64,000 bases of DNA from Epiperipatus broadwayi (GCA_028023455.1 JAQFVV010000011.1:3224001-3288000); one strand, 5' to 3'. Positions 7,395 to 64,000 are shown, counted from the stretch's first letter. A program made the numbers and translations. Notes: generated by a model from the sequence alone, not told the origin.

Positions 7395-7612
7395 TAAACT
7401 CTCTGTACAGTAGTGCCACCTAGTGCAAGCCTTAGTAATCAATGGGTGCAAGAAGATTTGTTCATAAAATTGCTATCTAATGCCTACTCATCCAATATCC
7501 CCAGACTAGTTTCTAGCTTCTAACTTTCATCAGTGAGGAGTCTTGGATTTGAGAGCACTGCATCTAGATCTTAGAATAGAAAATGGTGATCATGTGAGGT
7601 TTTAGTGGTTTT
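7395..7612. mobile_element. Family A hammerhead retroelement, truncated, with a short inverted 3' tail at the right end
   Basis: Aligns by eye to the copies at 10950, 24954, 29141, 30845, 52154 and 61755. Hammerhead on the minus strand at 7498-7539: TCCTCA CTGATGA AAGTTAGAAGCTA GAAA CTA GTC TGGGGA. Confidence 0.85.
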
Positions 7613-8289
7613 ATACATAATTCTTTTTTAAAAAAAATTGTATTGTCTATATTCATTTGTGAGTCACTGCTCATGATGATGATAATGATGATTGTTTGTA
7701 CATGCTAATATAGTTAAAAAGATAACAAAAGTCTTTATACTCTTAATGATAAATGTTATTTATTGAAAGAAAATGTATCCATATATTTTACCTGTATTTT
7801 TTTGGATCCAAATTTAACATCATATAATAATACACAGTTAATATATAATCCAACATTTCCAATGATTTTATTTTCTCTCTCAGGTGCTTCTGTATTTACC
7901 AGACAGTTTAGATTGGGGATTAAATTAGTGATTTTAGATGACTACTGAATTTAAGTTGTTGCTTTAACCAACTAGGCTATTTTGTCAAAGATAAGATTTG
8001 ATAGAAATTTTATATATTTATGTATGAGAGTCCTTAATTTCTTCATTTTTATATTTTAATAGCAAGACCAATGAGTAGTTTTAAGCAACACGGATAGTAT
8101 TCATTAACTTCACCTTCTACAAAATGAAGATAAAGATAACAGGATGACTCTGATAGATAAGTACACCAAATTTAGTTCTACCATTACCTGTGATGAAAAA
8201 TAATTAAATTTGTTAGAACATCAAGCTGATCTTTAATGTATTACAATTTATAAAACATAGCGCTATAAAAATAAATGCTTATTTACATC

Positions 8290-8380
8290 TTAAATTTAAT
8301 ATTCACAAATATAAAGATCACCAATTTAATTCTTCTAATAGTCTTTTACTAATCAGATTAGCAACACCTGAAGAAAAGAA
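8290..8380 (+). mobile_element. Degenerate Family C fragment (tRNA-like head to hammerhead 5' half)
   Basis: TTAAATTTAATATTCA...AAGATCACC...GCAACACCTGAAGA is collinear with the copies at 9327 and 29691. Confidence 0.5.
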
Positions 8381-8719
8381 AAAATTATATAAATGTTATA
8401 CTTTATACTAATTTGTATGTTTGTAGTTTGATTTTTTTCTAAAACATTTAACAATTCAATTATTTCATGAACGTAGTTCAATATATAATTTATGAGTAAA
8501 ATGCTGGCATTACAAATCTTCAGATAACATTATATAAATAACATTATTTTATTCCAGATCAATTATTTTTTGAAATATTACTTTATTGTATCAATCATTT
8601 ACCAACCATAAATCCAACATATTTTTCTGTTTGGATATTTTTTTTTTTTTTTACAATTTTTAAATTTGAATTCGTACAATACAATTATAATTAGTTGTTC
8701 TTATTAACTACATTTTCAT

Positions 8720-8958
8720 AAATTCTAATTTGACTACAAGTATAATGTATATACTAAACTTTAGATGTAATTAGATGGGATTTGAACACCAACTTTTAAG
8801 CTCCATTCAGGTCATTCCAACTCATACAACTGATACACATGAACACATAATGTGAAAAAGATAAATGATCTCCAATATACATATTTTGTGCTTAAACAGC
8901 ACTCATCAATTGATCCAGATTACTATCTCCACACATATATAATCAGTGCTCAGTTTAT
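8720..8958 (-). mobile_element. Family B hammerhead retroelement
   Basis: Homologous to the copies at 50505 and 55111. Decayed hammerhead at 8871-8914: GATCAA TTGATGA GTGCTG TTT AAGCAC AAAA TATGTATA TTGGA. B-box-like GGTGTTCAAATCCC lies downstream on the same strand. Confidence 0.8.
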
Positions 8959-9326
8959 TTTATGATATCAAATCTTCAAACTTTAATGGATACAAATCAC
9001 AGTTTTTTTTTCTCAGTTGCCTAATAGTTCTTAACTGAAATATTGGTTGCATTTTCTCGAAAACAGAATGAACAAGTATATGAATGTTTTTTTTATATAT
9101 AGATATTTGTGAACATGACAGATAAACTAAATTATGGCCCTTATTCCCAGGAGACTGTGAAATTGCCAGTCAAGATAGCGAAGTCTTCAGCTGTCCATAT
9201 TGATGATGGCATGCTCAAAGCCCTTGTTGATGCCAATTTGGTTGTCAATAAATTTAAATAAAATATAAATAGCATATTCAAAATGATATTACTATTTTAC
9301 AAAAGCTTGCTATGATTTTGCATTTG

Positions 9327-9610
9327 TCTGAAGATTTGTGATTATGGTATTTTAGAATTAATTATTTTCTGAATTTTTCCCACCATCTAATATTAAATAT
9401 TGAATGTCTTTAGACAAATTTAAATTTTATTTATACTTTCCAAATACATTCAACTGTAATTAGTAGCACACAAGTTGGTATTTAACACAATGTTTCTTGT
9501 GGTATCGTTCTTCATTCTTCAGATATTGTTGACCTGATCAGAGACAGTACTTCCATGGGAATCAAACCATGACCTTGAGATTATTGAATATTCAATTTAA
9601 GATAATGTTC
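9327..9610 (-). mobile_element. Family C element (tRNA-like head, hammerhead, AT-rich tail)
   Basis: The minus strand reads B-box-like GGTTTGATTCCC, then AATAT CTGAAGA...GAAA CA TT GTGTT, then a tail ending near CACAAATCTTCAG. The tail is shared with 24229 and 29691. Confidence 0.8.
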
Positions 9611-10949
9611 TAATTTTGTCCTTATAAATTTCTTTGATTTTTAAAAAAAATTTTATAACATATTTTGGAACATATAAATATAAGACTTATGGTCAAATAA
9701 GAGTTGTATGAAGTTTATTTGTATTAAAATTAATTGCAATATCATTCTCAGAATTTAAACAAAAACTGGTCTACTTCCAATATCATGGCTTCTGATTTTC
9801 AATGATAATGTTTTAATTGTTTTAAACCAGAATGCAACTGTTTTCAGAGTACACCAAGTATTATTGCTATTTGAGCCACGTAGTCTTTGATTTATTAATT
9901 AATATTCACAAACTACATATAAAAAATCAAAATAAGAGTCATATATTGTAAGTTATAAACAATGAGGATTTCCAATTCTTCAACAAGGTTTATAATAAAT
10001 GCTTAGCCAGATAAAGCATTTAAAATATCTCTGTCAGGAACCTCCCCCACCAACCCCTGACCATGGTTTCATGCTTTGGCACTTCTCAGAGAGGTGCCAG
10101 GGTAGGCTGTTTTAAATAAAGTATCGTGAAAAGAGAACTATGAGAAATGTGGGTGTTTTTATATGAATAAGTACTACAGTAAGAATGAAAGAAATTTTGG
10201 TCATATATGAATAAAACATTCAAAATTCTTAAATGTTTAATCAATCTACAATAGAAAAAAAATTGTCATCAACTTTTGTCTTGAATGAATATCAGCATTA
10301 TAGTGTGAACCAGTTTAAATATTTTGTCAGATTAAATTATGGAATTAAATATTATGATGCAGTACAGAGACTAATATATTGGTTGCTGCTTTGACCATGT
10401 TAAAGTGTATAGAATTTTATTACAGAGATTTAACTACTTCAGTGAAATTACTTTAAAAACATAGGATTGTTGTTCTGCTAAATTTATTTTTCAACTGACT
10501 TTACATAATATAAAAGCAATAAAAAATTTGAATTGAGAGTAAATAACATTTTGACAACAGCTTGATGATGGTAAGAACAATCAATATATTCTTTGGATTA
10601 AACTTTTAATTGTAAGGGATGTCTTAATTAGACTGAGCATGAGAAATAGATGAAAAGTAATAGACTTCATAAAAAATATTTTATGATAAATTTGAGCATG
10701 ATTTTATGGAAGTTATTAGACCTCATTTATAATTTAAAAATTATGTCAAATGTAAAATTCAAAATTGATTGATTTTTTTTTTGGGAGGGAAGGATCAGAC
10801 AGGATAAAATTCAGTGAAGAATGACAATTTGGTGAGGTACTGAAGTCTTTCAAAAAGTAATGTTCATTACAAAAAAAAAGTCAAAAGATGTCATAACTAA
10901 ATAACAACTAAATGAAGTACCAGACTGTGATATGACATATTTGTGTTTT

Positions 10950-11948
10950 TAAGCAGGCAAAACTCTCCTTACAGTAGTGCCACCCTGTGTCAACCAGAGT
11001 AACCAATGGATGCCAGAAGGATTGTGCATAAAAATCCCCATCTAGTACCTACTCATCCAATATCCCCAGACTCGTTTCTAGCTTGTGGCCTTCATCAGTG
11101 AGGAGCCTTGAATCTGAGAGCACTGCACCTAGATCTTAGGATCTAATGCAACCCTTCAGCAACCACCTTTTATCTCTACTTAACTACAAAACTATGAGAA
11201 TGAAATTGAAGACACAATAATATCTTTCAATCTAAGCTTAATAGCTTATATAGTCATATGGGTCTGAACTCAGTTAAGCACCCATACACTTTGGTGTCTA
11301 TGGCTCTTCGATAACCATAGCCACCACTATCCTATTAGGCAGGATTGGTGTTAAACCACTAAATATCACCATCTCTTATGCTAGCACATAACTGTTATTA
11401 AACAAGCAAAACTCTTCATACAGTAGCGCCACTCAGTGCAAGCCAGAGTAATCAATGAATGCCAGAAGGCTTGTGAATAAAATCCCTATCTAGTGCCTAC
11501 TCATCCAATATCCACAGCCTAGTTTCTGGCTTGTGGCCTTTGTCAGTGAGAAGCCTTAGATCTAAGAGCACTGCACCTAGATCTTAGGATCTAATGCAAC
11601 CCTCTAGCAGCCACCTTTTATCTCTACTTAACTACAAAACTATGAGAATGTAGGCTCAAAAGCTTATATAGTCATATGGGTCTAAACTCAGTTAAGCACC
11701 CATATATTTTGGTGTCTATGACTCTTTAACAACCATAGCCACCACTATCCTATTAGGCAGGATTGGTGTTAAACCACTAAACATCACATGATCGCCATAT
11801 CTTATGCTAGCACATAACTGTTATTAAACAGGCAAAACTCTCCATACAGTAGTGCCACCCTGTGCAATCCATTGATTACTCTAGTTGACACAGGGTGGCA
11901 TTACTGTTTAATAACAGTTGTGCTAAGATAAGAGATGGTGATCATGTG
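10950..11948. mobile_element. Family A multimer (about 2.1 tandem units, periods 449 and 426 bp) plus inverted 3' segment; one insertion
   Basis: Unit starts AAAACTC at 10959, 11408 and 11834. The inversion junction is near 11868. Perfect 13-bp TSD ATATTTGTGTTTT at 10937-10949 and 11949-11961. Confidence 0.92.
11063..11104 (-). ncRNA. Minimal type I hammerhead ribozyme motif (Family A)
   Basis: TCCTCA CTGATGA AGGCCACAAGCTA GAAA CGA GTC / TGGGGA, with a 6-bp helix I and a GUC triplet. Predicted cut between 11069 and 11068. The homologue in unit 2 (near 11517) has GGC instead of GUC. Confidence 0.75.
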
Positions 11949-12142
11949 ATATTTGTGTTTTACATGTTGGTTAATATAATCATCAGAAAACTCATTTTGT
12001 AATTTTTGTATTTTACCTGGTTCATTTTCTCTGTTTTTATATGTTAGAATAGCTATCATTGAGTTCCTACTTTAGCTAATTAATAATGCATATATAAATA
12101 CAATAACAAATTTGAAAAATCAAAATATTAGACCATTAAAAT

Positions 12143-12240
12143 ATCACATGACCACTTTTCTTATGCCTACACAAGCTGTTAAGACAGTAGCAAATTTCTC
12201 TATATAATCTACTGATTGCCATAGCTTATACTAGTTGGCG
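12143..12240 (-). mobile_element. Family A-related 3' end fragment
   Basis: ATCACATGACCACTTTTCTTATGCCTACACAAGCTGTT matches the Family A terminus ATCACATGATCACCATCTCTTATGCTAGCACATAACTGTT. Confidence 0.55.
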
Positions 12241-15200: not shown

Positions 15201-15699
15201 CATTACAGGATAAATAAATGCGCCCATTTAGAATTTTTATACTAATCCTTGAGATAGTGGCATAATGTAAAACTGGTTAGTGGGAGATTAGATTCTAAAT
15301 CATGTTCCAAATGAAAAAAGTGAAAAGAATTCATGAAATGAATGGAATTTTTGTTTCATTCACCACTTTGGCATTCATGTTCTCTTATTTAGAGAACTAA
15401 ATATGTTAAACAGCAAAAGAATTAAAGGCAATAGTTTGGCAAATAAAAAATAACTTATCCAGAAATGATATTATAATTCAATATATCGATTTTTAGTTCA
15501 TGATCTTTTTTAAATTATTAGAATTATAAATAATTATCATAAGATTTTTTAAAAAATCTTTTTTTTTTATATCCAACAGTAAATTTAGTTGGATGTTGTT
15601 TTCTTAGACATATTCAGGATAACATGTGGTCATTGTGTTCATTTTCTTCATAAATAAAAATTAACAACCAACCAATGTGGATGTGATTAAACTCTAACT

Positions 15700-16380
15700 G
15701 TGAAAGACATAGATAGTAATTATTTACTCTATAACTGCAGTGGCAGAATTGAAAAACGTAATAAATGACTGAATCTATTTCCTGGTTGGAATCTCTACAG
15801 GTTCTTTATGCACCTTTATGCACCTAGAAAACAGGAAAAACTTCATAAATTAAATTGTTCCGCACAAAATGTATCTTGGGCCATTTGACTTTTATTATGG
15901 TCTTTATTCATATGATTTGAAAAGAATGTGTGGGGATATTGAGATTATTTAATACATTTATAAAAGATATTACATGTGAGAAAGAGAAATGTGAATAACT
16001 CTATGCATATGTGTTTAATTAAAAAAATCAGATATATTAATCTTTATCTGTGACTTAAAGTTTATATTTGAGCTACATATAATCTCTAGTTTAATATATG
16101 ATTAGTGATAATTATTACTGTATTTATCTAAAGTGGATGGTGACAAAGTTGTGGATGGAGTAGGTTTGACATTCTTAAATCAAAATTGATAAATACTATA
16201 CATATGATAAAGATATATATGGAAGATGGTGCCCTTGACCAATTAACGAGTGCTGGTTCAGCATGAAATGCATCTTGGGGGTCATTTAGCTTTTATTATA
16301 TCTTTATATGATTTTGAAAAGAATGTGTGAGGGTCTGGAAGTTATTTAATACATTTTAAAAATGATATTATTTTATTAAA
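15700..16380 (+). mobile_element. Family B' tandem pair (399-bp period) with hammerhead motifs
   Basis: Duplicated block GCAC/T-(A/G)AAA-TG(T/C)ATC-TTGGG...TTTTATTAT...GAAAAGAATGTGTG at about 15861 and 16260. The second copy has GACCAA TTAACGA GTGCTG GTT CAGCAT GAAA TGC ATC TTGG (16238-16279). Confidence 0.7.
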
Positions 16381-18782: not shown

Positions 18783-18849
18783 TCATATGAGGAAAATAAT
18801 AAATCTTCTTGGTCACAGATGTTAAGAATGTTTGGCTAAATGAAAGTAT

Positions 18850-20984: not shown

Positions 20985-21720
20985 TATTGCTAAGACTATT
21001 AATTAATATATGGTATGGCTGAAGATTTCTCAACCCCATATAACTATTTGAGTTAGATAGCTAGATTTGCAGACATATAGATGCCAATTTTAATTTTTTT
21101 ATTTAAAAGTTAACTATCAGATAAGTGCTAACTTTAAATGGTATTTTGGATCTAGTGTCGGAAATATCCTAGCACCTCACCGAGGAAAGCCAATAACTTG
21201 AAACTGGTTTGAGGGTGAAGTTAATTTCTAGATAGAGATTTTAAGTGCTTTCTTGGAATTTTTTAATAATGCTTGTTAGAGCTATTAGCACACTCTTTAT
21301 TTTAATTTATAATTATAAGATTATCAAATTAAATCACGTGATGTGTGACTTTAATTTATTTACTATTATAATTTGGAGTTTAAGTCTTAAGAGATGCTAT
21401 ATTGCTAAGACTTAATATATGGTATGGCCAAAGATTCCTCAGCCCCATTTAGCTATTTTAGTTAAATAGATGGATTTGAAGGCATATAAGTGCCTGAAAA
21501 TTTCAGATGTTCTACTTAAAAATTAACTATCAGATAAGTGCTGGTTTTGAGATGGTATGGATTTATCCTAGCACCTCACTGAGGAAAGCCAATAGCTAGA
21601 AACTGGTCTGGGGTTTGGGGATAATTTCCAGATAGAGATTTTAAATGCTTTGTCTTATGGCATTCATTGATAAATCTTGTTGGAGCTATTAGCATGCTCT
21701 TTATTTTAATTTACTATTTT
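20985..21720 (+). mobile_element. Family F tandem dimer with two hammerhead motifs
   Basis: Units start ATATTGCTAAGACT near 20985 and 21399. Hammerheads lie at 21174-21215 and 21573-21614. ATCACGTGAT lies between the units. Confidence 0.88.
21573..21614 (+). ncRNA. Minimal type I hammerhead ribozyme motif (Family F)
   Basis: ACCTCA CTGAGGA A AGC CAATA GCT A GAAA CTG GTC / TGGGGT, with a 6-bp helix I. Predicted cut after 21608. Confidence 0.78.
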
Positions 21721-22269
21721 AAATATATCTTATCTTGAAAACTAGAAAAATAGAAACTTTAATATACATAAATCATACTTTACAAACAGCAACAAAAGCT
21801 TTATTTGTTGCAATAAATTTAACACAGCATATTTCCAATTAACTCTTATCCAGGTTTAAACTACTAAATTTGGATTTTTAAACAAATATTAAATAAGTAA
21901 ATTGATATTACTTTAGCAAATTATTACTCAAGCATGTTTAATATAATGGCTATCTTTTATTATTTTTAAATTTTAACAATAATAATTTTTATAAATTTAA
22001 AATATTGTTACAGAAGCAGAGGAATTATTGAATATTTTTGCATATTAACCATCCCAATGGTCAGACCAAGATTGTCTATAAATACATAAACTATGGCCAC
22101 CTTTTAAAATCCTTGCACCCACTCTGTAACTTCTAAAAGCAAAATACCTCTCTTGTGGATATTACCCTGGGCACCATTCACCCATTTGACTGGGATACCC
22201 ATACAAGAAAATTTTACATGCTTTAAGTGCTTGATTCCACAATTAGACTGTTTTTTATGAGGCTCCTCA

Positions 22270-24228: not shown

Positions 24229-24749
24229 AGTGTTTTTCTGAAGGTTTGTGATGATGGTGTTCTAGCTGTATTTTTATATTGGACTATTTCCATCATCTAA
24301 TATGTGTGTTGAATGTCTTTAGAAAAGTTTAATTTTTAGTTAAATATTCCAAATGCATTCAACTGTTAGTAATATCACAGCAAACAGGTTAGTATATGCA
24401 CCAACTGTTAGTAATATCACAGCAAACAAATGTTAATAATATCACAGCAAACAGGTTAGTATATGCACTAACTGTTAGTAATATCACAGCAAACAGGTTA
24501 ATATATGCATATACTAACCTGTTTGCTGTGATATTACTAACAGTTAGTGCATATACTAACCTGTTTGCTGTGATATTATTAACATTTGTTTGCTGTGATA
24601 TTACTAACAGTTGGTGCATATACTAACCTGTTTGCTGTGATATTACTAACAGTTGAATGCATTTGGAATATTTAACTAAAAATTAAACTTTTCTAAAGAC
24701 ATTCAACACACATATTAGATGATGGAAATAGTCCAATATAAAAATACAG
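24229..24749. mobile_element. Family C 3'-end palindrome (484 bp, no spacer) plus 37-nt unpaired tail
   Basis: 24266-24749 is self-complementary about 24507/24508, with one mismatch seen near the centre. Perfect 13-bp TSD ATAATCCATTCTT at 24216-24228 and 24750-24762. The arms contain short internal tandem repeats. Confidence 0.93.
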
Positions 24750-24953: not shown

Positions 24954-25757
24954 CACATGATCACCATTCTTGTTGCTTATATAAGCTATTTACACAAAGA
25001 CAAAACTCTCCATAGAGTAGCACCACTCAATGCAAGCCAGAATAATCAATGGATGCAGGAAGGTTTTTGCATAAAATACCTATCCAGTGCCTACTCATCC
25101 ATATTCCCAGACTAGTTTCTAGCTTGTGTCTTTCATCAGTGAAGAGCCTTGGATCTGAGAGCACTGCACCTAGATCTTAGGATCCAATGCAACCTTCCAG
25201 CAGCTACCTTTTGCCTTATTAGCTAACTATAAAGCTTTGAGTCCAAAATGAAAACAATAATGTTTTCAATTTAATCTCATTAGCTTATATAGTCATATAG
25301 ATCTGAACTCAGTTCAGCATCCATAGGTGTTTTTGGTACTTTAGTAATCACTGTGACCATAATCCTATTGGGCAGAAATGGTATTAAACCATTAAACATC
25401 ATACGATCACAATTCTTTATGCTTACATAAGCTGTTTACACAGAGGTAAAACTCTCCATACAGTATCACCACTCAGTGCAAGCCAGAGTAATCAATGGAT
25501 GCAGGAAGATTTGTGCATAAAATTCCTATCCAGTGTCTACTCATCTAATAAGATAAAAGGTGGCTGGTGGAAAATTGCATTGAATCCTAAGATCTAGGTG
25601 CAGTGCTTTCAGATCCAAAGCTCCTCACTGATAGTCTGGGGATATTGGATGAATCAGCTCTGGATATGGATTTTATACAAAAACCTTCCTTATTCATTGA
25701 TTATTCTGGCCTGCCCTGAGTGGTGCTAGTTTATGCAGAGTTTTGCCTCTGTGTAAC
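24954..25757. mobile_element. Family A 1.3-mer (446-bp period) plus inverted segment
   Basis: AAAACTCTC at 25002 and 25448. Minus-strand hammerhead at 25104-25145. The inverted copy from about 25547 has lost helix II and GAAA (CTCCTCACTGAT/AGTCTGGGG). Confidence 0.88.
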
Positions 25758-29140: not shown

Positions 29141-29540
29141 CACATGATAACCAAATCCTATGTTTACACAAGATGTTAAAACAGTATCACACCCTCCATA
29201 TAGTAGCGCCACCCAGTGCAAGCCATAATAATCAATGGATGCAAGAAAGTTTGTGCATAAAATCCCTACCTAGTGCCTATTCATCCAATATTTTCAAAGT
29301 AGATTTTAGCTTATGACTTTCATTATTGAAGGGTCTTGATCTGAAAGCACTGATTTATAGTTAGTTAAATAGGTAAAAAGTAACTGCTGGAGAGTTGCAT
29401 TAGATCTGAAGATCCAAGTACATTCCTCTAGGATGCAAAGCTCCTCACTGATGAAATCCTCAAGCTAGAAACTAATTTGGGAATATTGAATAAGTAGGTA
29501 CTAGATAAAGTGTGGCAGTAGTGTATGGAGAGTTTGCTAT
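29141..29540. mobile_element. Family A tail-out fold-back insertion
   Basis: The left end is exactly at CACATG and the right end is at GAGAGTTTGCTAT. Perfect 14-bp TSD TAATAAAATGTTTT at 29127-29140 and 29541-29554. Plus-strand hammerhead motif at 29442-29482. Confidence 0.9.
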
Positions 29541-29690: not shown

Positions 29691-30290
29691 GCTGAAGGTT
29701 TGTGATGATAGATGTGATATGTTGGACTATTTTCATAATCTATGAGTGAATGTTGAATGTATAGAAAATTTTAAGCTTTATTTAAACATTCCAAATACAA
29801 ACAACTTGTTAGTAATAACGCACAAATAAACAACACAGGTTGATAATTACACAATGTTTTGAGTATTATTGTTCTCCGCTCTTCTTCAGGTGTTGCTGGC
29901 ATGATGCACACAGTGACAGTATTCGCATAGAAGTTGAATTCACATTTTTAAAATTTAAAATATCAAATTTAAGGTAAATGCTCTAACCAACTCCAACTGA
30001 GGCCTTTGCAGAATAACTCAGTTGGTTAGAGTGTTTGCCTTAAATTTGATATTCAAGAATCTAAAGGTGCGAGTTAAACTTCTACACGAATACTGTCACT
30101 GTGCATAACAGGCCAGTTACACTTGAAAAAGAGTTGTGAATAATACTACTCAAAACATTGTGTAATTACTAACCTGTCTTGTTTATTTGTGTTATTACTA
30201 AAACGTTGTTTGTATTTAGAAAGTTTAAAGTTTTCTATATATTCAACATTCATTCATAGATGATGGAAATAGTCCAACATATCACATCTA
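29691..30290. mobile_element. Family C head-to-head inverted pair with tRNA-like heads and hammerheads
   Basis: The plus copy has A-box TAACTCAGTTGGTTAGAG (about 30014) and B-box-like GAGTTAAACT (about 30071). Minus-copy hammerhead at 29849-29894: AACAC CTGAAGA A GAG...CTC AAAA CA TT GTGT. Aged TSD candidates at 29676-29690 and 30292-30306 match 12/15. Confidence 0.88.
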
Positions 30291-30844
30291 AAAAGCTTAA
30301 TGTTTGTAAAAAAGTTATCTGATATCTGAAAGGGATTACTGCAAATAGAAGTGACTATGCACTCAAAAACATCAAACCAACTGAATATGCCTTATCTTCT
30401 GACAATGAAACTGCTATTACATTTCCATAGGAAAGAAAAAGTTATTGAAAAAAAAAAGATATCCAGAGCTTGTTTAATTGCAATAGAACTGGGTTGTGTT
30501 AATACCTGTATGGTTTGAGAAGATCAAAATTTGATGATTTGTTCTTTATTTTATTAAAAGAATTATGTTACAATTTTTTTTTCAGTGTATGTAAGTGAGT
30601 GAAGACATACATAATAAATATATATTGTATATAAATGTATTACTCAATTTAGTATTAATAATTTTATTTTTAAAAATTTATTTATATTATAATCTTAATT
30701 TATGTGTGCACAATATATATATATAAAGTATGTTATAAACATGTGTGTGCATGTTAACAAGTATATACTCTTAAAATGTAATAAACAATAATTATTGTAT
30801 TGAAATGAAAAACTTAAACAAATATGAACTACTATCCATGATGT

Positions 30845-31150
30845 ATATAGTAGCAAACTCTTCAGACAGTAGTGCCACCTGGTGCGAGATATAATCATCA
30901 ATGTATGCTAGGTTTGCATAAAATCCCTATCTAGTGTCTACTCATTCCCAAACTAGTTTCTAACTTGTGTTTTTCATCAGTGAGGATATTGGATGAGTAG
31001 ACACTAGATACAGATTTTACACACAAACCTTCTAGTATCCATTGATTACTATAGTGCACTGGGTGATACTACTGTCTGAAAAGTTTGCTAATGTTTTAAC
31101 AGCCTGTGTAAGCATAGAAAATCATGATCATGTGAAGTTTTAGTGGTTTC
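30845..31150. mobile_element. Family A fold-back whose junction is hammerhead helix I
   Basis: The antisense copy runs through the hammerhead to TGAGGA (30981-30986), then switches to the sense strand TATTGGATGAG... and ends GATCATGTGAAGTTTTAGTGG. Confidence 0.85.
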
Positions 31151-43819: not shown

Positions 43820-44575
43820 TTATTTATAAATAATTTTATTGAAAAACCATATGTAATAATGATACAATTGTCAATCAAAAAAAAAAAATAGTAATCCATG
43901 TTAGTCAGGCAACCAAATGTTCTGATGTGGTTACTGGTGTTGTTAATCCAGATTAATCAGGCTCCATGTGTTGTCAAATAAAAATCTGGATGAGATTATT
44001 CTGTCCTTATGGTGAAATTCCTTTAGCTTGGAAATGAATGTGTCTTCAGGCCTGGGATGAGGAAAGGTAAACTTGTTGCGACATCTGGCCATCCAGATGG
44101 CATAAGTGAGAAAGGTTGAGAGTCTTGTGGTGACATAATCCCTGGACAGGAAGCAGCATTTAATATTTAAGATTTTGTTCAGGGAAATGTGGCAGTGGTA
44201 AGTAATGAAAGTTCTGATTTTGTTATATGCTGGGCAATCATTTATCATATGATCAAAGGTTTCACAGGTCCTATGGCAGTTGTGACACATAGGATCTATA
44301 TTCTTGAGGAATCTCCTGTAGTGCAGGAACCAGTTTGTCTGGAGTGAATTCAGGTTGATTTTCACTAGAAAGTCCAGGAACCTTGGCTCCAGCTTGAGAT
44401 TCTTGAAAAACCTGGTGACCACCTGATTGTTACCACTGAGGTAAGGAATGGTAGAGTTTTGTGTGGGAAATAGCAGGCTATGAGCATCCCAAATGGAGAT
44501 TTTTTTCTGAATACTAGGGTAGAGTGCCCATTGTGAGCGAAGGCTACCGTCGTAAATTCCTTTTTAAAAGAGCGA
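43820..44575 (-). mobile_element. 5'-truncated L1/Tx1-like LINE 3' end (zf-RVT-type zinc knuckle)
   Basis: The ORF at 43943-44422 contains CHNCHRTCETFDHMINDC and AIWMARCRNKF, with AATAAA downstream. The segment is GC-richer than its flanks. Confidence 0.8.
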
Positions 44576-47770: not shown

Positions 47771-48333
47771 ATGTTAAAACGAAGATTTGCAAGGGTTAAA
47801 TATATAAAATACATATTTTGCGGGTTCATCCATGTTAAAAACTTTTAATATTAATATACTGATGTTTCGACTTGGTCACACAAGCCATCCACAGAGTTAT
47901 AAATGGTAGAAAGATGGTTGTAGAGGTGCTATAATCACTGATTTGAATAAAATGTTAAAATTCCACCAATAGCAAAAAATGTTAAATTTAGGAATGTTTT
48001 TTAAAAAAATCTTTCCAAATAGGAGGAAGTTTACATGTATCATCTCGCTTATTGATACAATCTGGCCTTTTAAGTATCTTAATGGCTTCTCTAATTTTGT
48101 AAACTTCCTTCTATTTGGAAAGATTTTTAAAAAAAACATTCCTAAATTTAACATTTTTTGCTATTGGTGGAATTTTAACATTTTATTCAAATCAGTGATT
48201 GTAGCGCCTCTACAACCGTCTTTCTACCTTTTATAACTCTGTGGATGGCTTGTGTGACCAAGTCGAAACGTCAGTATATTAATATTAAAAGTTTTTAACA
48301 CGGATGAACCCACAAAATATGTATTTTATATAT
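47771..48333. mobile_element. Family D fold-back, two 236-bp arms and a 62-bp spacer, hammerhead motif in each arm
   Basis: Arms at 47800-48035 and 48098-48333. Motif ACT CTGTGGA T GGCTTG TGTGAC CAAGTC GAAA CG TC AGT at 48236-48275 (+) and 47858-47897 (-). Low-complexity TSD candidate TTTATATATAT at 47760 and 48325. Confidence 0.88.
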
Positions 48334-50004: not shown

Positions 50005-50172
50005 ATATACATATCAAGTGACCCCAAATGTTAAGAAACTTCAGCTACGCCCTCTATGAATAAATATATAAAAGTTGGACTCTCTCAATTATCCAGTTTG
50101 AGAGTCAAACTTTTATATATTTATTCACAGCGGGTGTAGCTGAAATTTTGGAGAGTGATTTGATATTTAATT
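50005..50172. repeat. Small fold-back hairpin
   Basis: The core arms TTCAGCTACGCCCTCTATGAATAAATATATAAAAGTTGGACTCTC (50040) and its near-complement ending 50144 are clear. The outer extension is weaker. Confidence 0.8.
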
Positions 50173-50504
50173 ACAGCTAGCCCTATGCTTTGGGCTTATT
50201 TCATATATATATGTATTAGTGAAGCTGGAATTTTTGGGTAAGATACACAGTAAAACTTTTATTATCAACCTTTTAACGTAATGATCGCGAGCTCTAAAAG
50301 ACTCCAAAAACACAAGGGCTTATACGCATTGTTTTAGTATACTTCATGACAGCTGGGTCACTATATATATATATAATATTGTATACTATATTTGATATAT
50401 AAGTATGGCAATTTAAAAAAGTAGTTTGATGTCTTACTTTTACAAAATATTTTTCCTATTCTTATTTTATATTTATTTTCTAATTTTTATGACATGAAAT
50501 AAAT

Positions 50505-50843
50505 AATATATAGGGTATATGAGCACAGACTTTCACATGACCCACCACTCTCCACACTATCTCATAACACTGATACACTCGAACACACATATGTTAAAAA
50601 GATAAATAATCACCAATACTTATAGCATATATGTGTAGAGATGGTAATCTGGACCAACTGATGATTGCTGGATTAGCATGAAATACGTATATTGGTGATT
50701 ATTTATCTTTTCAACATATGTGTGTTCGAGTGTATAAGTGTTATGAGATAGTGTGGAGTGGTGTGTCATGTGAAAGTCTATACTCATATACCCTATATAT
50801 TACAGATATAGACACAGGTATATATAAGCCTGTGTGTTTCAGC
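50505..50843. mobile_element. Family B fold-back insertion with hammerhead in the loop
   Basis: About 115-bp arms and a 41-nt unpaired tail. Perfect 17-bp TSD TATGACATGAAATAAAT at 50488-50504 and 50844-50860. Confidence 0.92.
50653..50696 (+). ncRNA. Minimal type I hammerhead ribozyme motif (Family B)
   Basis: ACCAA CTGATGA TTGCTG GAT TAGCAT GAAA T ACGT ATA / TTGGT. Other copies restore helix II as GTGCTG/CAGCAC. Confidence 0.75.
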
Positions 50844-52153
50844 TATGACATGAAATAAATGTAAATTACTAATAGAACTATCTCTTTAGTCTTAGTTATA
50901 CAATTTCTTTTTTTCTCTCTCTCCAAGCTAACTGCAATGCCAGATGACAAAGTTGGTGTAATGTGATTATGTTCTTAAAGTTCAGTTTACTGTTGATTAT
51001 CTAATCGTTCACAATGCATTTTAATGAAGGAGTAAGTCCTTGCGCGATTGGCAAGGCTTTTACCAGTAGTCGCACATCAATGAATAATCTTCAACTTTCT
51101 GAAAGCATTAAAAACCATTCTCAAACAGCAGTAAAGCGCTTTTTAATAGTTAATAAAGGAAATACTTTTTAAATTCAAAATCTGCTATATAAAATTAAAA
51201 TTATTTTTTAAAAAAAATTACAATTTTCTTCCACCAAATTGAATCCTTCACGAATTTGTGTCTTAATGAAATAAATAGATCGCGTACTTTATATATATGA
51301 AATTTAGCAATAAATAAATAAAACTATATATTAAATATATTTTATAAATACATGCACTAAACATGCTTTTGATTTATTCGTGGCAGGTTCAAGGTTAATT
51401 TTAAAAAAATTTGAATGTTTTATTGTTCGGGCCAAAATCCAAGACCTTGATCCAGAATCTACCATTCTATTACTGGTCTAAAACCTGCAGGATTAATTTT
51501 ATACTAATACCGAAATATAGACATTTAAAATTTGTTATCAGATATATAAATTTCAGTATGTTCTTAATTGCATGCTTTTAAAAGACGATGAGATTCATCA
51601 CATTGTTTGCGTTTGTAATGAGAGACGATGTCTCTCTCTCTCTGTCTCTTTTTTTTTTTTTGTAATAAACTCATTCTTCAGATATTCTTGACTTCCCTTG
51701 TATTAAATTCATAACTAATATTTCTTTCATTATTCAGAAATATGGAATTGTAAATAGGATTATTTTTATCTTGATAGATTTTGTATATATATTATATTAT
51801 TCTAGCATTCACACTTGCCTTTGTTTTGTCATTTTATATAATTAAACAATTATAGGAATACATTTAATGGAATAATCAAGATTAATCTCCATTATGTTTA
51901 GTTTATCATTGGAATTTACTATATAACCCCACTAAAGTTATTAGGCATTTGGAAACCAGGTTTGAACTCCTTGTCACATATCTTTACTAAGTTTTCTTCT
52001 GTGTGTTTATATTAAATAGTTTACCCTCCATTGTGATTTCTCTTCACATTATTATTATTGCTATTAAATACTTTTGAATTCAAATTTTTTCTTTGGAATT
52101 ATTTTTATTATATTCCAAGTGACTTTCACCAGATCAGCAGTAAATGTCTTAAT

Positions 52154-52422
52154 ACAATAGTAATCTCTTTGTACAGTAGTGCCACCTAGCACAAGCCTTA
52201 GTAATCAGTGGATGCAAGGTTTTTGCATAAAATTTTCATCTAGTGCCAGCTCATCAAATATCCTCAGACTAGCTTCTGGCTTGTGGCTTCATCAGTAAGG
52301 AACCTATAATCTGAGAGGACTGCATCTAAATCTTAGGATCAAATACAACCCTTCAGCAGTCAACTTTTACCTACTTAGTTGCACACTTTGTGTAAGAATA
52401 GGAAATGGTGATCATGTGAGAA
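52154..52422. mobile_element. Family A insertion with short inverted 3' end
   Basis: Hammerhead at 52261-52301 (minus, GAAA changed to GAAG). Ends GATCATGTGAGAA. TSD TAAATGTCTTAAT / TAAATGCCTTAAT (12/13) at 52141 and 52423. Confidence 0.85.
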
Positions 52423-55110: not shown

Positions 55111-55497
55111 TTAATTACAATGAGTTCAAACTCACACTTTCAAGCTCCCTACATCCCTCCACTCCATCTTATATAACTGATACACATGGCCACATACATG
55201 TCAAAAAGATAAATGATCTCCAATATATGCATTTCATGCATTAAAGTATAAAGATTTGCTATCTTATATGGACTGAGCACTGATTATATATATGTGTGTG
55301 GAAGATGATAAGCTGGATGAACTGATGAGTGCTGGTTCAGCACAAAATACATATAGTAGAGATCATTTATCTTTTTCACATGTATGTGATCATGTGTATA
55401 AGATGGAGTGGATAGGTGTAGGGATCTTGAAAATCTTAGTTCAAATTCTTTCTAATTATATTAAGTTCAGTATAGCCAATATACTTGTGTTTAAATA
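55111..55497. mobile_element. Family B fold-back insertion
   Basis: Inverted arms. Hammerhead at 55317-55360 (CTGATGA GTGCTG GTT CAGCAC AAAA T ACAT ATA). Low-complexity TSD candidate TTATATATAT at 55101 and 55498. Confidence 0.85.
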
Positions 55498-56559
55498 TTA
55501 TATATATAATGAAAAAACTAAACAGAAAACAAAGATATTCACCCATCCCTCTTCACACTGCTCTTTCATGAAACGGAAAAGATGTCCGCATATTTTATAA
55601 CACATTGGGCAACAAATATGATATGCTGCCATTATTTTTATTGATTAATGATGTGACATTATTATATATAAATGGATTGTTAATATAAAGAAAGAAATGA
55701 GTGGGTATAATCTATGCAATAACTCCTTTTACTTCAACAATAAATCCCAACAAAAGAAATAATATAATTAATGGAGAAAATTTATTTAGCCTCAGGGAGA
55801 TTGTCAATTACTAGTAATTAATAGTTTCCTGGCAACATCAGAGGCAAAAGTTATTTCTGTTTACATGGATAAAATTTCCTTATTTCTGTTCTTTATTAGA
55901 ATAATAATCCATGAAAAATATTTCATTCAATTAGAGAAATATGTTTTTAGCTAGAAATATTTCTTTATTAGCTTAGTGCAGAAAGGAATTTTCTGTTAAC
56001 TGAAAGGAAACTGTTATTCTAGTTTCAGGCCTTAAAGAAATCAAACAAAACTAATCCATAGTACCTATTCCAAAAATTCTTATAATTATATCATTATTAC
56101 TATATGATTATTCACATAATAAACATGGATGAAGTGCTAACCATCATGTATTAGCCAGTGTAATGAGTTTTTTGCATTTTTTTAAACCTCAGAATAAGAT
56201 AAAATCATAATTTTCTCAGTTGCTTTGTAGTTCTTAATTGAACTAATAATTGGGATTTCTTGAAGTGTGAAAAACAGGAAAAATTAAATTATAGCTCTTA
56301 TTTCCAGGAGGTTGTAAAATCACTATCCAAGACATATGTTCATAGCTGAAGATAGAGAATTCTAAGAATCCTCTGATTCCGGATTTATATTGCTATTAAA
56401 TGATGAACATTTATTTATATGCTTATAATTGCAGATTACTTTCAAATAAATGTGAAGGAAGATTTTATGAATTGAAATAAAATGTCTAATAAAAAACAGA
56501 ACATTATTGGATTTTATAAGGTTAGAAAAAAATAAAGAAATAATTGATTTAAAATGTGG

Positions 56560-57000
56560 TCATGCACTTTGAAACAAAGGTACAATCATTGGAATCACAA
56601 ATGGAATGGGATTTGTTATAAGTAAAAAGTGGAAGAACAAAGTTGTGGACATTAATGATATATCAGACAGAATGATAAGATTAGTTATTCAAATTAATGG
56701 AAGATACCAAATGCAAACAATTCTGGTTTATGATCCAACAAGTTTCTATAGTGATGAAGAAATATAAATTTTTTATAGGGATGTACAAAATGCTTTTGCT
56801 TAGAGTGTTGTGGATAAATTTGTTCTGGTACAGAAATTTAAAAAAAAAACAGATTTGAGGAATGCATAAGAAAAAGAACTGCATTATGAATTCTTTCTTT
56901 GAAAAAATACTAAATGGAAATGGACTAATAAAAAATATGCATTTCAAAATTATAATATTTTTAATAGATTCACCACAGAAAATCATTATTAATTAATGAG
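56560..57000 (+). mobile_element. RTE LINE AP-endonuclease remnant
   Basis: NGMGFVISKKWKNKVVDINDISDRMIRL...ILVYDPTSFYSDEEI.IFY matches the RTE APE motifs GVGF...SDRI...VYAPT...DEE.E.FY. Confidence 0.75.
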
Positions 57001-59232
57001 ATATAAGATATGTCTTGATGCAAAACTATAGGGATTAAGAACATTAAAGAAGATATTAACAATTGACAATTTTTACCTATAAAGTTCCTCTAATGAATTT
57101 AAATTAGAACTTGCAAATCATTTTAAAATATTAATAGAATTAGAAAACTGTTCAGACTTGATTAAAATCAATAAGGAGATAACTGATATATTCTTAAGAT
57201 CTGTTAAGACAAGACAATCTATTAAGAAAGAAGGAATATAAAAAAAAAAATTAAATTATGTAAAAAAAATTGAATATCTATTATTTTGAAAATTATATCA
57301 ATTCATGCTAAAGAACAACAGTGCTTGTAGTTGTTAAAAGCTGATAATACCAAAATACACAGATGCTGAACTAGTAGCTGGATAATTCAAGAAAGAATAA
57401 AAGATGACTTCTGGATGAAAAGTGCATTAGGTTCAAAAAATCCAAGCTAGAGCCTAATATGGTGGTACAGATAGAACATCATTGGATAGGAATTTAATAA
57501 GCATCATCATCTAATATGTAGAAGAATTGGAGTAGTGTAAATGCAAGTTGAGCATGTTTTTGACAGAGTGTGATGATAAGACTCTACAATTAAACACACT
57601 ACAACATATTGTAAAACTGACTTATGCATTTAGAGCCCTTTTTTGAAATTAAGTAAAGCTATCAACATTCTAGTAATATTTCTTTTTTTTATTTTAAAAA
57701 TGTAACTTTTATTAATATCTTTGATTAATTTTTAATAAAATCTATGACGCATAAAAGATTTTTATTTGTGTATCAATGATGCTGGAAATTTTTCTCGATG
57801 TTATTTAAAATATGGCCCTAATAAAATTATACATGTTAAAGACTCAAAAAAATTAGTCAATACTTGGCTCTATTATGCTTCCCAGAATTCGGAAAAGGGA
57901 CCAGAATTTGGCTCTCTCCTACATCTACGATGCCACATGGAAGCTAATCGATTTGCCTCCCTAAGGCAGATCCCTTTCATACCTGAATACATATCTCCTA
58001 TCATGGAAATGATTAGTAGTATTATTTTAATTAAAAAAACAAACAAATAGAAAGTACCTATTGTTAAATAAGAAATGAGACTTTTCCTATAGTAAAGAAA
58101 TATATTGTTACTTTGAATTTAAAATAAACAAAATTTGATTAAAACAAAAAAAAAAAAACTTTTACATAAGTAAATCTACAACTTCAGATTACTCATGTAA
58201 CCAAAGTAACCCAAGCTATGTAAAACCATGTGACTAATCCACAGTATGTAAAAATTTCTGTAATTCGGTGTAAAATAATAAATCAACTTTTATATATGTA
58301 ATTCTACAACTGTGGATTGCCCGTGTAAACTCAGCAATCCATGCTATGTAAACTCTTGAACCCTTTAAGACAATTAAAGCTTATCATTATAAAAAAATAC
58401 TTGGGTCTATTATTACATTTTGTAAAATACTAATATTAAATAATTTACTACTTTAAATTTGAAATTAATGTTGGAGCAAATATTGCATTGAAATCTGAGT
58501 AAAGTAAATTTAATAAACTATTTATATGTAACTGCATGTGAAAGAAGAGCCAAAAAAGTTCATAAGCCCATCATGGGTGTTTTCTTTTTTGGAGATTCAT
58601 CAGGACATGAATGATGTATGGTCTGATGATGCAATTAAAAAATTTAATATCAAATTAAACTAGCATACTCCCACTTTTATACCATTTGGATTTTGTATAC
58701 GGAGCACTCTCCCAATTTGTAAACCATGAAGACATATGTCTGATGCAGGTCTAGTATTTTACTAAATAATTCGATAATTTATTGCTTTGGAGTTAAAAAA
58801 ATTTTGAACAGTAAGAGACAGAACTAGACCATAATGTATAAACCTTGAACACCAGAAGCTGTCATTCATCATAGTACCAAGCCATGCAGAGGCATTTTAT
58901 ATTTCTGCTATCGACAGACAATATTTTCAAACTTCAGTTGCCATTAGTTTCAATCATGGTGAGATTAGCATTAGTAGAATATTTTTTATGGTCTTCTACA
59001 AGTAATTAAAAAAATCAATGTCAGATTTTTATTAAGAAATTAAAAAGAAAAATTAATAAATGAAAAGCAACACTAATATTGCTTTAGACATGAAGAAAAT
59101 ATTAAAAACATTAAATATAATTTAAATGCGTTTTTAGTACAAGTTCTCTTGGCAAAACCATATATTATAATATAATAGTTGCTTTGACGAGAATACTCAA
59201 CACTCAACACTAAAAATGTGTTATTTAGTCAA

Positions 59233-59304
59233 GCGTTGGCGGCCTAGTGGTTAGCATAGCTGGCTTCCAAGAAGCTGGCCCGGGTTCGCTTACCGGTCAA
59301 CGCA
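59233..59304 (+). tRNA. tRNA-Gly(TCC), probably a pseudogene
   Basis: 72-nt GCGTTGG...CAACGCA cloverleaf with anticodon TCC at 59266-59268. It has two anticodon-stem mismatches, T-loop TTCGCTT, a T-stem mismatch and no T4 terminator. Confidence 0.8.
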
Positions 59305-59929
59305 TTTAACATAAAAAAAAAAAGTGTTATTTATAATTAATATTTCAATATTTTCTCAGTATATAAAACAATATTAGTATTATATTTAATTTATTACATT
59401 TCAATGGCAACATCTTTTAAAAAATCAATTACAGGTATAAGCATATAAATCTTATAGAAATTGAATTCAAGTGAATAATATTAAGTCGGAAAATCAAAAT
59501 AATAATTAAAAACCAATTAATATACTGTTAGTTTGTTATTATTTTTTATTCAAACGACAATTGTTCTTTTGTTTAAAATAAATTGAAATCGAAAAGTTTT
59601 TTATTCCACAATTATAAAGAAAACACTGTTAAATCAATGAATAGAAAACAAAAGAAAATTGTAATTATGCTTAAATCATAATTTCCTCTTTAAGAAAGAA
59701 ATCTATTTCACACACAGTACTGAAGTAATGATTTAGTATAATTGTTACATTAGTATTGGCATTATTTTTTTTTTTACTAAAACTCTTTTCTAGTACTACT
59801 TCTACCATGTGACAATGTTGATGATGAGGTCACGAATAATATTAAAATTAATTTTAAGTAAAATGCCCAATTCCTTAAAATGAAATATACTTTTATAATG
59901 TAGAATAAAATTTCTGATATTATCTATAC

Positions 59930-60459
59930 CAGTGTTCTTCAACCCTTGGTCCACGGCCCGGCATCGGGCCGCAGAACTTTTCTGCAGGTCCGCGTGCTAG
60001 ACGGGCAGTAAAAAGTTTGTAATAATAAATAATAAGAGTTTAAACTTTTAATTAATATAGCCAATTTTTATTTATTTTTTCATCTCATTTTTACCCAATT
60101 AAAAAAAAAAAGAAAACAGAACGAAAACAAAATCTAATCAATCATTCATAAATTAATTTGTTTTTCTAGTTATCACAGATGTTTATGGGGGGGGGGGGGT
60201 AGAATTAAATTTTTTATTACTTTTCTAAAAAAATTAAAAAAAAAGTTTTTTATTATATAAACTCCATATATATATAAAACTTTATCTTATATATTTAACA
60301 TTGTTGTTTTGATCAGTTATAACAATTATGCTTATCTTTAAGAAAATTTATCTATAGACTTCTGCCAGTCTGCGAAATCTTATCCTTATTTTTGCTGGTC
60401 CATGGAACCTTATCCTTATTTTTACCGGTCCGCAGGTGTGAAAAGGTTGAAGACCACTG
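59930..60459. mobile_element. Buster-type hAT MITE (530 bp)
   Basis: TIRs CAGTGTTCTTCAA and TTGAAGACCACTG. Perfect TSD ATCTATAC at 59922-59929 and 60460-60467. Confidence 0.96.
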
Positions 60460-60899
60460 ATCTATACCATGTTATTTTTAAGAAAATCCAAACGACTAAC
60501 AATTGCTATCAGTTGTGATAATTGATACCGATGATGATCATATCATTGCTCTAAAGGTTCTTTAAAGATATCAAATATATATTTGAGTTTTCAAATATAT
60601 GTATGTAATATAAAATTATTAAGAATCTTTCTAGAATATATAGAGTTAAAAAATATTGTTTTGATAAAAATAAATATGAAAAATAAAAGAATTTAAGAAT
60701 AATAATTATTTAATAAAATAATAGATAAACAAATAGAAGATAATAACAATAAGAAAATTATTATAAATTGAAAAGAAAAATTTATTTATGATTTTTTCTT
60801 CTTTTGACAGCCTAAGTATTAATAACATATCATAAAAGAATCTACAGAGATTCCAACCAGAACATGGATTGACACATGGTTTTATTAATGTCTTAAATT

Positions 60900-61740
60900 C
60901 TGCTAATGTAACTATAGATTCAATATCATTAAATATCAGATTTATGTTTGTGTTTGACCATAATTACCTAGGCTAGACTAGTAAATTTTATATATGAAAC
61001 AGGAAAGTGTAACATTCATGGATTGTTCTAAATCTATTGATGAGACTTTAATGGTGTCTAGGAAGATCAAGTCTGCCTTGCTTTACTGTTATATATATAT
61101 AAGAAATTTTAGAACCTCATGAGAATTTCATTTTTATGCCATAATTCTTTGGTTGTATTTTTATATTGAACATTCAGAAAGATAGTCTTGATTTAAGATG
61201 AATCTCAAGTGATTAAATTATATCTTGAATTATTAGCAGATATCTAATTAAGAGATTTTTTTTACATATATTTTGTAAGACAACATTTTTTCTGATATTT
61301 GGTATAGAAGTATGTAAATGAATAGGAATCATAGGAGTAGAGTTGAGTTTGCAGGATATTTCTTATGTCAAAATTTAATTGAATATTCAAAAGTTTATTG
61401 TGGGAACTTTTTCTCCAAATAGGAGCACATTATTCACCAACAGAATATAACAGTGCTGCAAAAGCTGTCTATAAAGTGCATACATAACAAATCCAAATAG
61501 TGACAGATGACTTTTCAAGGAAGTTACCTCTAAAAATTATTTTACATCTCACCTTAAAATAAATAAGCAAAATATGATAGGCTATGATCCAAGATATATA
61601 TTTTTATATACATGCTTGTCTGACATAACATAATCAAACAGCTATGCTTTAAGGATTGGATTACATAAAAAAATAAATGATTATGGAAAAATAGTGAGGA
61701 ATAATGAAGACAATCTATCTTAGAAATGTTAGTGACGCAC
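60900..61740 (-). mobile_element. Degenerate I-group (ingi/Vingi-like) LINE remnant
   Basis: The minus strand gives TAFAALLYSVGE.CAPIWRKSSHNKLLNIQLN, resembling ALALxYSxAEYCAPVWxxSxH. The clade assignment and boundaries are tentative. Confidence 0.45.
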
Positions 61741-61754
61741 ATAATTAAAGTTGT

Positions 61755-61975
61755 TTATAACAAGGCAAAACTCTCTATACAGTTGTGTCACGCTGTGCCA
61801 ATCAGAGTAATCAATGGATGCCAGAAGGCTTATGAATAAAATCCCTATATAATGCATACTCATCCAATATCCCCAGACTAGTTTCTGGCTTGTGGCCTTC
61901 GTCAGTGAGGAGCTTTGGATCTGAGAGCATTGCACGTAGGATCTAGGTGCTAGTATAAGAGATAGTGATCACGTG
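61755..61975. mobile_element. Family A insertion with twin-priming-like inversion
   Basis: Perfect 12-bp TSD AATTAAAGTTGT at 61743-61754 and 61976-61987. The right end is at GATCACGTG. Confidence 0.92.
61870..61911 (-). ncRNA. Best-preserved Family A hammerhead motif
   Basis: TCCTCA CTGACGA A GGC CACAA GCC A GAAA CTA GTC / TGGGGA. Predicted cut between 61876 and 61875. Confidence 0.8.

Positions 61976-63559: not shown

Positions 63560-64000
<441 letters not shown>

Follow-up and report, generated by a model that had tools for sequence, protein, structure and literature searches.

Metazoan retrozymes of the non-long-terminal-repeat (non-LTR) type, whose definition and co-occurrence with Penelope-like elements (PLEs) were described before (PMC7229834, PMC4209133, bioRxiv 10.64898/2026.07.22.740005), are non-coding repeats of 150-450 bp, arranged in tandem or dispersed, which carry classical type I hammerheads. 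They are further characterized by a low GC content, target duplications of more than 4 bp, highly self-paired monomers, long arrays and the presence of autonomous PLEs with atypical hammerheads alongside (PMC7229834; 10.64898/2026.07.22.740005). The hammerhead of Penelope elements themselves is a minimal one, with an unpaired nucleotide after position 9, a G10.1-C11.1 pair, a long helix II, a short helix I and palindromic positions 15.2-16.2 (PMC4209133). In a lizard PLE, cleavage and extension take place on both strands of the target, reverse transcription has an internal start 85-92 nt beyond the position of the hammerhead cut (computed by us from the distances of 111-118 nt and 26 nt), a tail of 30-40 bp is formed and hammerhead catalysis is not required in vitro (PMC11167929; Frangieh et al. 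2024).

Here, we analysed a stretch of 64,000 nucleotides from Epiperipatus broadwayi (GCA_028023455.1 JAQFVV010000011.1:3224001-3288000), called the window below, which is AT-rich (about 28% GC) and belongs to a 5.6-Gb assembly. The original prediction had described positions 7395-61975 as a multi-family system of hammerhead-ribozyme retroelements. In all likelihood, the window holds many short non-coding retroelements of the non-LTR retrozyme type, belonging to two lineages (families A and B; we keep the family letters of the original prediction) and moved as non-autonomous passengers of PLEs. On its sequence features, the system appears to fall within the published class of animal retrozymes. 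This class of elements is already known in animals, and the window contains a real, well-preserved example of it and no new kind.

The elements share with metazoan retrozymes all of the properties listed above except the long arrays: here, mostly one to three units are present together with an inverted arm, and the elements are known from DNA alone. Unlike usual retrozymes, moreover, the B unit of ~490 nt is slightly larger and the 10.1-11.1 position is often A·A or U·U. With PLEs they have partial tandems, inverted arms, tails and an internal start of reverse transcription ~90-120 nt past the motif in common (PMC4209133, PMC11167929), but A and B differ from PLEs in possessing the classical instead of the minimal architecture, in encoding no protein and in sharing no detectable sequence with the sampled PLE pseudo-long terminal repeats (pLTRs). 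The picture of what such elements are remains unchanged. What is added is a large AT-rich genome of the invertebrate type (5.6 Gb) in which hammerhead retrozymes and intact PLEs co-exist in thousands of copies, and passengers with the full Penelope insertion signature, which directly supports, at the level of the genome, the still largely inferential view that PLEs mobilise animal retrozymes.

Hammerhead motifs and their lineages

Type I hammerhead-like motifs are genuinely present in the window, far in excess of chance. They were searched with a strict descriptor consisting of helix I, the core CTGANGA, helix II (minimum 3 bp), GAAA, a helix III opening with A...U, any nucleotide but G at position 17 and helix I' (minimum 4 bp), with 30 Markov shuffles as control. 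Over the whole window this descriptor returned five intact sites (7533-, 11098-, 61905-, 21579+ and 50658+, the sign giving the strand) compared to a mean of 0.03 in the shuffles, and tolerating one core mismatch also yielded 21180+ and 10089-. A covariance model trained on ten A-type motifs and run with the filters off detected 13 sites at E<=0.015, six of which lie outside the training set. Next to these, three B-type motifs are present, an intact one at 50650-50699 and decayed ones at 55314-55363 and 16235-16284. The earlier figure of about 20 motifs is reproduced once decayed and partial motifs are included (~21-23, made up of the A-type and B-type motifs, the two arms of a foldback element and three to four half-motifs in a short interspersed nuclear element, SINE C), but not for the intact motifs alone.

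All five strict sites possess the type I core (C3-U4-G5-A6-N7-G8-A9, G12-A13-A14, A15.1-U16.1 and H17, with helix I open), and every core nucleotide is kept in the consensus of 53 family A units as well as in 27 of the B-type motifs scanned across the genome loci used. A complete hammerhead had been claimed for each family; this holds for A and B, but neither for family C (SINE C), which has only the 5' half of the motif and a G at position 17, nor for the foldback at 47800-48333 (probably the former family D), whose core has U at position 6. The tiny palindromic helix III that had been described was found back as ACTAGT in A, ATACGTAT in B, ACGT in the foldback and ACCATGGT in the element at 10089. 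Together, the forms ACTAGT, ACTGGT, ACCATGGT and ACCAATTGGT have lengths of 6, 8 and 10 nt, with the palindrome kept save for a U·G wobble in ACTGGT.

The number of families had to be revised. At least five otherwise unrelated families had been proposed, but family A (unit of ~447 nt), the 21180/21579 family (~409 nt) and the 10089 element have a ~170-nt 3' module in common, running from the hammerhead to the 3' end, next to dissimilar 5' parts, and therefore form one superfamily. The same module was also found in a repeat upstream of a PLE at another locus of the genome. Family B (~490 nt) has no similarity to the A superfamily, and its hammerhead is unlike that of A in every helix. As judged from these comparisons, there are two independent motif lineages, the A superfamily and B, in addition to a Penelope-type minimal motif and a half-motif. 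Family A counts at least 7,367 candidates genome-wide.

Among the lineages of the A superfamily, the first pair of helix I is A-U, U-A or G·U and the sixth U-A or A-U; in helix II, 10.2-11.2 is G-C, A-U or U-A and 10.1-11.1 is A·A, U-A, G·U or G-C. Helices I and II thus display compensatory changes between lineages, with double-sided changes in four pairs (2.1-1.1, A-U/U-A; 2.6-1.6, U-A/A-U; 10.2-11.2, G-C/A-U/U-A; 10.1-11.1, A-U/U-A/G-C). In the motif alignment, 87.5% of the cells are paired, compared to 81.7±1.5% in shuffled alignments and 23-48% with the partners slid. The covariation score, drawn from a sample of about ten sequences with few independent events, amounts to 0.226, compared to 0.124 in shuffles (none of 500 reaching it) and at most 0.076 in the slid controls. 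These compensatory changes lend good but not overwhelming support to a constraint on the motif. Over the 30 positions that extend from the core to N17 (unit positions 293-322) in the 53 family A units, conservation is lowest at N7 and 10.1, both of which are free to vary; beyond this pattern, the motif is no better conserved in these units than its flanks, as expected of copies that decay neutrally.

Both A and B display the classical type I architecture, with a canonical core, a helix II of 3-5 bp and a helix I that runs on into a long duplex closing the monomer. The cut-to-cut monomer of a young A copy has a predicted folding energy of -152 kcal/mol compared to -121±6 kcal/mol after shuffling (z = -5.05), its ends being paired in the duplex that extends helix I; single motifs of 62-66 nt gave minimum free energy z-scores without significance. 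As a helix III palindrome of 6-10 nt cannot close as a hairpin, two motifs would need to pair to form helix III. Co-folding of two isolated motifs resulted in dimers with a domain-swapped helix I and is uninformative on a helix III dimer.

Insertion anatomy and the Penelope machinery

The structure of the insertions is what connects these families to PLEs. On the minus strand, a family A multimer at 10950-11948 consists of an inverted arm (tail and unit end), a partial unit and two units of ~447 nt. It is bounded by the 13-bp target duplication ATATTTGTGTTTT at 10937-10949 and 11949-11961, which indicates that the multimer was inserted in a single event. One of its hammerheads has an intact core, CTGATGA...GAAA (11061-11106, -; helix III ACGAGT, predicted cut after the C at 11069, 68.7 bits), and another, with core CTGACAA, is decayed (11509-11554, -; 47.1 bits). 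The family B insertion at 50504-50851 (+) is built of an inverted arm (50504-50618), a direct arm (50615-50810) that carries the intact hammerhead at 50650-50699 with helix III ATACGTAT, and a tail of ~50 nt, and is bounded by the 17-bp target duplication TATGACATGAAATAAAT. Several of the properties by which retrozymes are defined were found here: non-coding tandem units that each hold a type I hammerhead, target duplications (13 and 17 bp) and a self-paired monomer. The five open reading frames (ORFs) of at least 110 amino acids in the window all lie outside the A- and B-type units.

We extended this anatomy to 39 family A insertions, taken from the window and 29 other loci of the genome. An inverted arm stands head-to-head with the direct arm in 24 of the 39, both outer ends being the 3' end of the element (unit positions 436 and 441-447), and several insertions carry an additional 26-109 nt of the next unit as a tail. 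Family B likewise combines its 490-nt unit with inverted arms and a tail of ~50-57 nt, and in both families the copies are truncated on the 5' side and share their 3' end. Counted from the 3' terminus, the predicted cut is 114 or 123 nt upstream in A, 120 nt in B and ~113-120 nt in the 21579 type. This distance indicates that the unit boundaries correspond to the start of reverse transcription and not to the ribozyme cut. In A and B, we thus recognise the PLE insertion signature of a partial tandem, an inverted head-to-head arm, an optional tail and an internal start. Tandem units, inverted arms, tails, duplications and a fixed 3' end are shared with the PLEs of this genome and with the lizard element (PMC11167929), so that A and B fit mobilisation by PLEs well.

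The breakpoints of the head-to-head junctions differ from locus to locus in both families, from which it follows that the hairpins arise at insertion and are no parts of the element. This bears on a reading of the families as foldbacks derived from DNA transposons (miniature inverted-repeat transposable elements, MITEs) or as plain satellites, in which hammerhead-like strings occur by chance or through hitch-hiking. Rfam does read several junctions as MITE- or miRNA-like hairpins (MIR1120, mir-3149 and mir-3338, all below threshold), and the 47800-48333 family keeps a fixed foldback structure in all copies. The A and B hairpins, in contrast, are junctions that are broken differently at every locus, their copies share a 3' end, are truncated on the 5' side and come with tails and with target duplications that are long and variable, and both the motif excess and the covariation speak against chance, which leaves this origin with a next to negligible probability. 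The miRNA-like Rfam matches at 11839-11921 and 50571-50737 proved to be the head-to-head junctions of A and B insertions, and that at 24434-24554 lies within a tandem and inverted tract of SINE C.

Alternatively, the families could be ordinary SINE-like passengers of the reverse transcriptase (RT) of a long interspersed nuclear element (LINE, non-LTR), and not of PLEs. A 159-amino-acid ORF at 43943-44422 (-) has a weak zf-RVT match (22 bits, below the Pfam cut-off of 27.5) and could be a remnant of a non-LTR RT; furthermore, family C has a tRNA-like head as in LINE-dependent SINEs, and twin priming by LINEs is also able to generate 5' inversions. A and B, however, lack poly(A) or simple-repeat tails, their inverted pairs have a complete 3' end on both arms, unlike the products of twin priming, and the tail signature and internal start are specific to PLEs (PMC11167929) and common to the PLE copies of this genome. 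Dependence on a LINE is therefore very unlikely.

An autonomous partner with GIY-YIG and RT domains had been stated to be absent from the window, in agreement with a tblastn search in which six Penelope proteins of this genome gave no match, and no RT/GIY-YIG gene was found there. Elsewhere in the genome, at least 10,240 GIY-YIG candidates are present. Among them are intact PLE ORFs of 800-901 amino acids with a YVDD RT motif and GIY-YIG, identified by translation, six-frame GIY-YIG matches and their ESM Atlas neighbours (HTH_animal, RVT_1, DUF8422 and GIY-YIG). They belong to at least three clades, with 43-48% identity between the clades. A Pfam scan of these ORFs returned nothing, presumably because of their K/N/I-rich composition. 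Three clades (L073:4300-4345, L074 and L077) carry the motif C-TTGAAAA-N-[6-bp helix II]-GAAACGT-T, ~330-430 nt past the stop codon in two of them and, in the third, within the 432 nt that separate tandem ORFs. It is a minimal motif of the Penelope type in which U3-A8 replaces C3-G8, and two pairs of its helix II have changed on both sides between clades (GACTAT/ATAGTC versus GATTGT/ACAATC). In one clade, the copies end sharply 87 nt past the cut position of their own motif, and outward-facing head-to-head pairs occur in about one fifth of the copies among the matches listed.

The search for PLE ORFs that share their 3' ends with the families gave a divided outcome: intact RT/GIY-YIG ORFs were found, but no match of the 3' sequences in the three clades. 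Mobilisation in trans by one machinery, as originally proposed, is likewise backed by the Penelope-like anatomy of the insertions but not by a sequence link to the three PLE clades sampled. The interpretation as retrozymes or non-autonomous Penelope elements stands for A and B on the basis of insertion anatomy, but does not extend to family C, in which the hammerhead is incomplete. A match of ~70% between a 21579-type module and the region upstream of a PLE ORF was considered as a pLTR relation and rejected, as a genome search showed the module to be a repeat in its own right and the PLE copies to begin with the ORF.

Taking A and B as PLE passengers, their propagation could proceed as follows. 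Tandem copies would be transcribed into a multimeric RNA, which the hammerheads may cut to unit length, and the pieces may then circularise. A PLE RT/GIY-YIG endonuclease encoded elsewhere would bind the 3' module by the hammerhead and nick both strands of an AT-rich target, after which the cDNA would start internally, ~113-123 nt downstream of the cut position. Such a mechanism would account for the observed structure, in which units stand in tandem, a second arm is inverted, a short tail is present and the target is duplicated. Self-cleavage and circle formation of the A and B RNAs are predicted steps of this scheme.

Several observations weigh against the reading of A and B as self-cleaving retrozymes carried by PLEs. 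No Rfam hammerhead model matched at the gathering score, nor at E<=10 in the whole window, nor in two 91-nt stretches that contain the best A and B motifs; the Rfam scan suggested with the original prediction (Hammerhead_1 and relatives) thus scored no hammerhead in the window, perhaps because a hairpin cannot be closed by helix III. At 10.1-11.1, where G-C is the usual state, the most frequent variants of A and B have A·A or U·U, and the covariation sample is small. In blastn comparisons of A, B, the 21579 type, the 10089 type and SINE C with three PLE clades, out of the at least 10,240 candidates, no colinear match was obtained, and the sampled PLEs bear a motif that differs from that of A and B in its U3-A8 core. 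As their boundaries are starts of reverse transcription, the genomic copies keep no record of cleavage. No clustering of the inner arm ends at the cut site was seen in family A, nor in B loci retrieved via the direct arm alone. A 'fossil' cleavage signal, seen as inner ends of B inverted arms at -4 to +13 nt of the cut, was discarded as selection bias, these loci having been chosen by a query that contains the junction. Finally, no run recorded as RNA contains the stretch, and Logan contigs from small public runs of uncertain kind cover only the repeats within positions 7300-12000, show no ends of molecules and resemble low-coverage DNA, so that they carry no information on transcription or cleavage. 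In these runs, from about nine different and presumably related organisms, high copy numbers were seen for family A, the B-related family, SINE C and the 10089 type, which suggests that the families are common to a group of species.

Possible roles of the hammerhead in cutting and in recruitment of the reverse transcriptase

Within the framework of PLE-carried elements, the hammerhead shape might be kept chiefly as an RNA structure for recognition by the Penelope RT, with cutting weak, protein-dependent or dispensable and no circle stage needed. The spacing from motif to RT start is near-constant in unrelated families (113-123 and 120 nt) and the autonomous PLE (87 nt), the conserved module spans the region from the motif to the 3' end, and unit ends are RT starts rather than cut sites. 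The core variants agree with this idea, as autonomous PLEs have U3-A8 and the invariant A6 is replaced by U in a foldback family that is very young and high-copy. In the lizard element, moreover, insertion in vitro was unaffected by catalytic mutations of the hammerhead, which cleaved only with the protein, and the cut site was not found as the end of any read (PMC11167929). On the other hand, the A and B consensus retains all canonical catalytic nucleotides, N7 alone varying freely, which recognition alone would not require, and both cleavage and abundant circular RNA are documented for related retrozymes of animals (PMC7229834). We therefore hold a role in recognition without a need for cutting to be rather unlikely.

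The foldback family illustrates the core variants. The element at 47800-48333 consists of inverted arms of 233 bp around a centre of 68 bp, with a Penelope-type minimal motif in each arm. This motif reads CTGTGGA, a bulged t and GGCTTG...CAAGTC (a 6-bp helix II), followed by GAAACGT and C in the right arm and by GAAACAT in the left. An unpaired nucleotide after position 9, G10.1-C11.1, a helix II of 6 bp, a short helix I and palindromic positions 15.2-16.2 are all present. This set of minimal-hammerhead features is common to the foldback and the three PLE clades, with catalytic cores that deviate from the published Penelope hammerheads in both, as the PLEs of this genome read TTGAAAA (U3-A8) and the foldback CTGTGGA (U6). 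Genome-wide, at least 1,322 candidates of the foldback family are present at 97-98% identity and with a fixed inverted-arm structure; the family is very young and high-copy. In the copy that was read, the U6 motif may be a variant that is tolerated, or it may be inactive and retained as a relic for some other reason.

The near-constant distance between cut and RT start, 87 nt in the autonomous PLE and 113-123 nt in unrelated passengers, also suggests, be it tentatively and with more doubt than confidence, that the hammerhead, together with the ~90-125 nt that follow it downstream, acts as a single portable cassette for recruitment of the Penelope RT. If so, the hammerhead fold would be a structural part of the platform by which the enzyme recognizes its template, and unrelated 5' bodies, including a tRNA-like RNA polymerase III head, would turn mobile by capturing the cassette. 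U3-A8 or U6 cores could then persist, with selection acting on binding rather than on cutting. The constant spacing and the core variants in young families make the question of processing versus recruitment worth testing, and the two unrelated ribozyme lineages together with these variants would be natural material for tests of cutting, enzyme recruitment or both.

SINE C and other elements of the window

Family C is a SINE of ~295 nt with tRNA-like A and B boxes, seen in the alignment, and at least 3,317 candidates genome-wide; neither ARAGORN nor Rfam calls a tRNA on its head. In the window, it is present as a head-to-head pair at 29709-30295, with the 5' half of a Penelope-type motif only, and as a copy at 9341-9530 (-) with CTGAAGA...GAAAC and a helix II that does not form. 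The core reads CTGAAGA in some copies and TTGAAAA in one, followed by a bulged A and a short helix II opening with G...C. Because position 17 is G, helix I does not form and two of the three copies in the window have AAAA where GAAA is expected (GAAA is retained in L003 and in the copy at 9522), we do not accept this motif as a complete hammerhead. The schistosome Smα and Sjα repeats, attributed to Ferbeyre et al. 1998 and Laha et al. 2000, are reportedly SINE-like and combine a tRNA-type polymerase III promoter with a hammerhead. SINE C resembles them in coupling a tRNA-like head with A and B boxes to a hammerhead-like core in a dispersed repeat of ~295 nt. It differs from them in the incomplete motif and in a head that is not called as tRNA, and, as it has neither helix I nor a valid cleavage-site nucleotide, it does not combine such a head with a complete hammerhead. 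Among the matches listed, head-to-head pairs with outward 3' ends were seen in about 8 of 40 places. There are hints that SINE C, too, may be moved by the Penelope machinery despite its incomplete hammerhead. A block of 67-nt tandem and inverted repeats at 24355-24655 derives from the 3' part of SINE C and is the source of the mir-3338-like match.

The remaining A-superfamily copies are in different states of decay. The 5'-truncated family A copies at 7396-7577 (-) and 61752-61944 (-) have hammerheads that pass the strict descriptor (7496-7541, 65.1 bits; 61868-61913, 72.6 bits, the top model score of the window), and a truncated copy at 52172-52377 (-) has a decayed one (52259-52303). Inverted arms occur in the family A insertion at 24998-25748 (-), with a hammerhead at 25102-25147 (-) and a motif fragment at 25620-25644 (+), and in the head-to-head pairs at 29191-29506 (decayed hammerheads at 29289-29334, -, and 29440-29485, +) and 30855-31086 (hammerhead at 30943-30988, -, with a weakened helix II). 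The 10089-type element spans 9945-10104 (-), and its hammerhead at 10051-10097 (50.1 bits) reads CTGAGAA, G8 being A here, with ACCATGGT as helix III. Two tandem units of ~409 nt make up the 21180/21579 family at 20996-21725 (+), the hammerhead at 21172-21217 being decayed (CCGAGGA) and that at 21571-21616 intact.

Older material of family B (B') includes a head-to-head pair at 55157-55402 (+), in whose decayed hammerhead (55314-55363) AAAA replaces GAAA, and a decayed fragment at 16204-16300 (+) with the motif at 16235-16284 (core TTAACGA, helix III ATGCAT). A fragment of a B-related family at 8821-8990 (-) is 80% identical to the B unit. Outside the mapped elements, a near-perfect hairpin of 95 nt at 50045-50139 scores 53.8 bits against MIR1120 on both strands (gathering score 86) and is probably a Stowaway-like MITE with no relation to the hammerhead elements. 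At 63804-64000 and 2319-2392, the window contains long microsatellites of the (TATC)n and (AT)n types.

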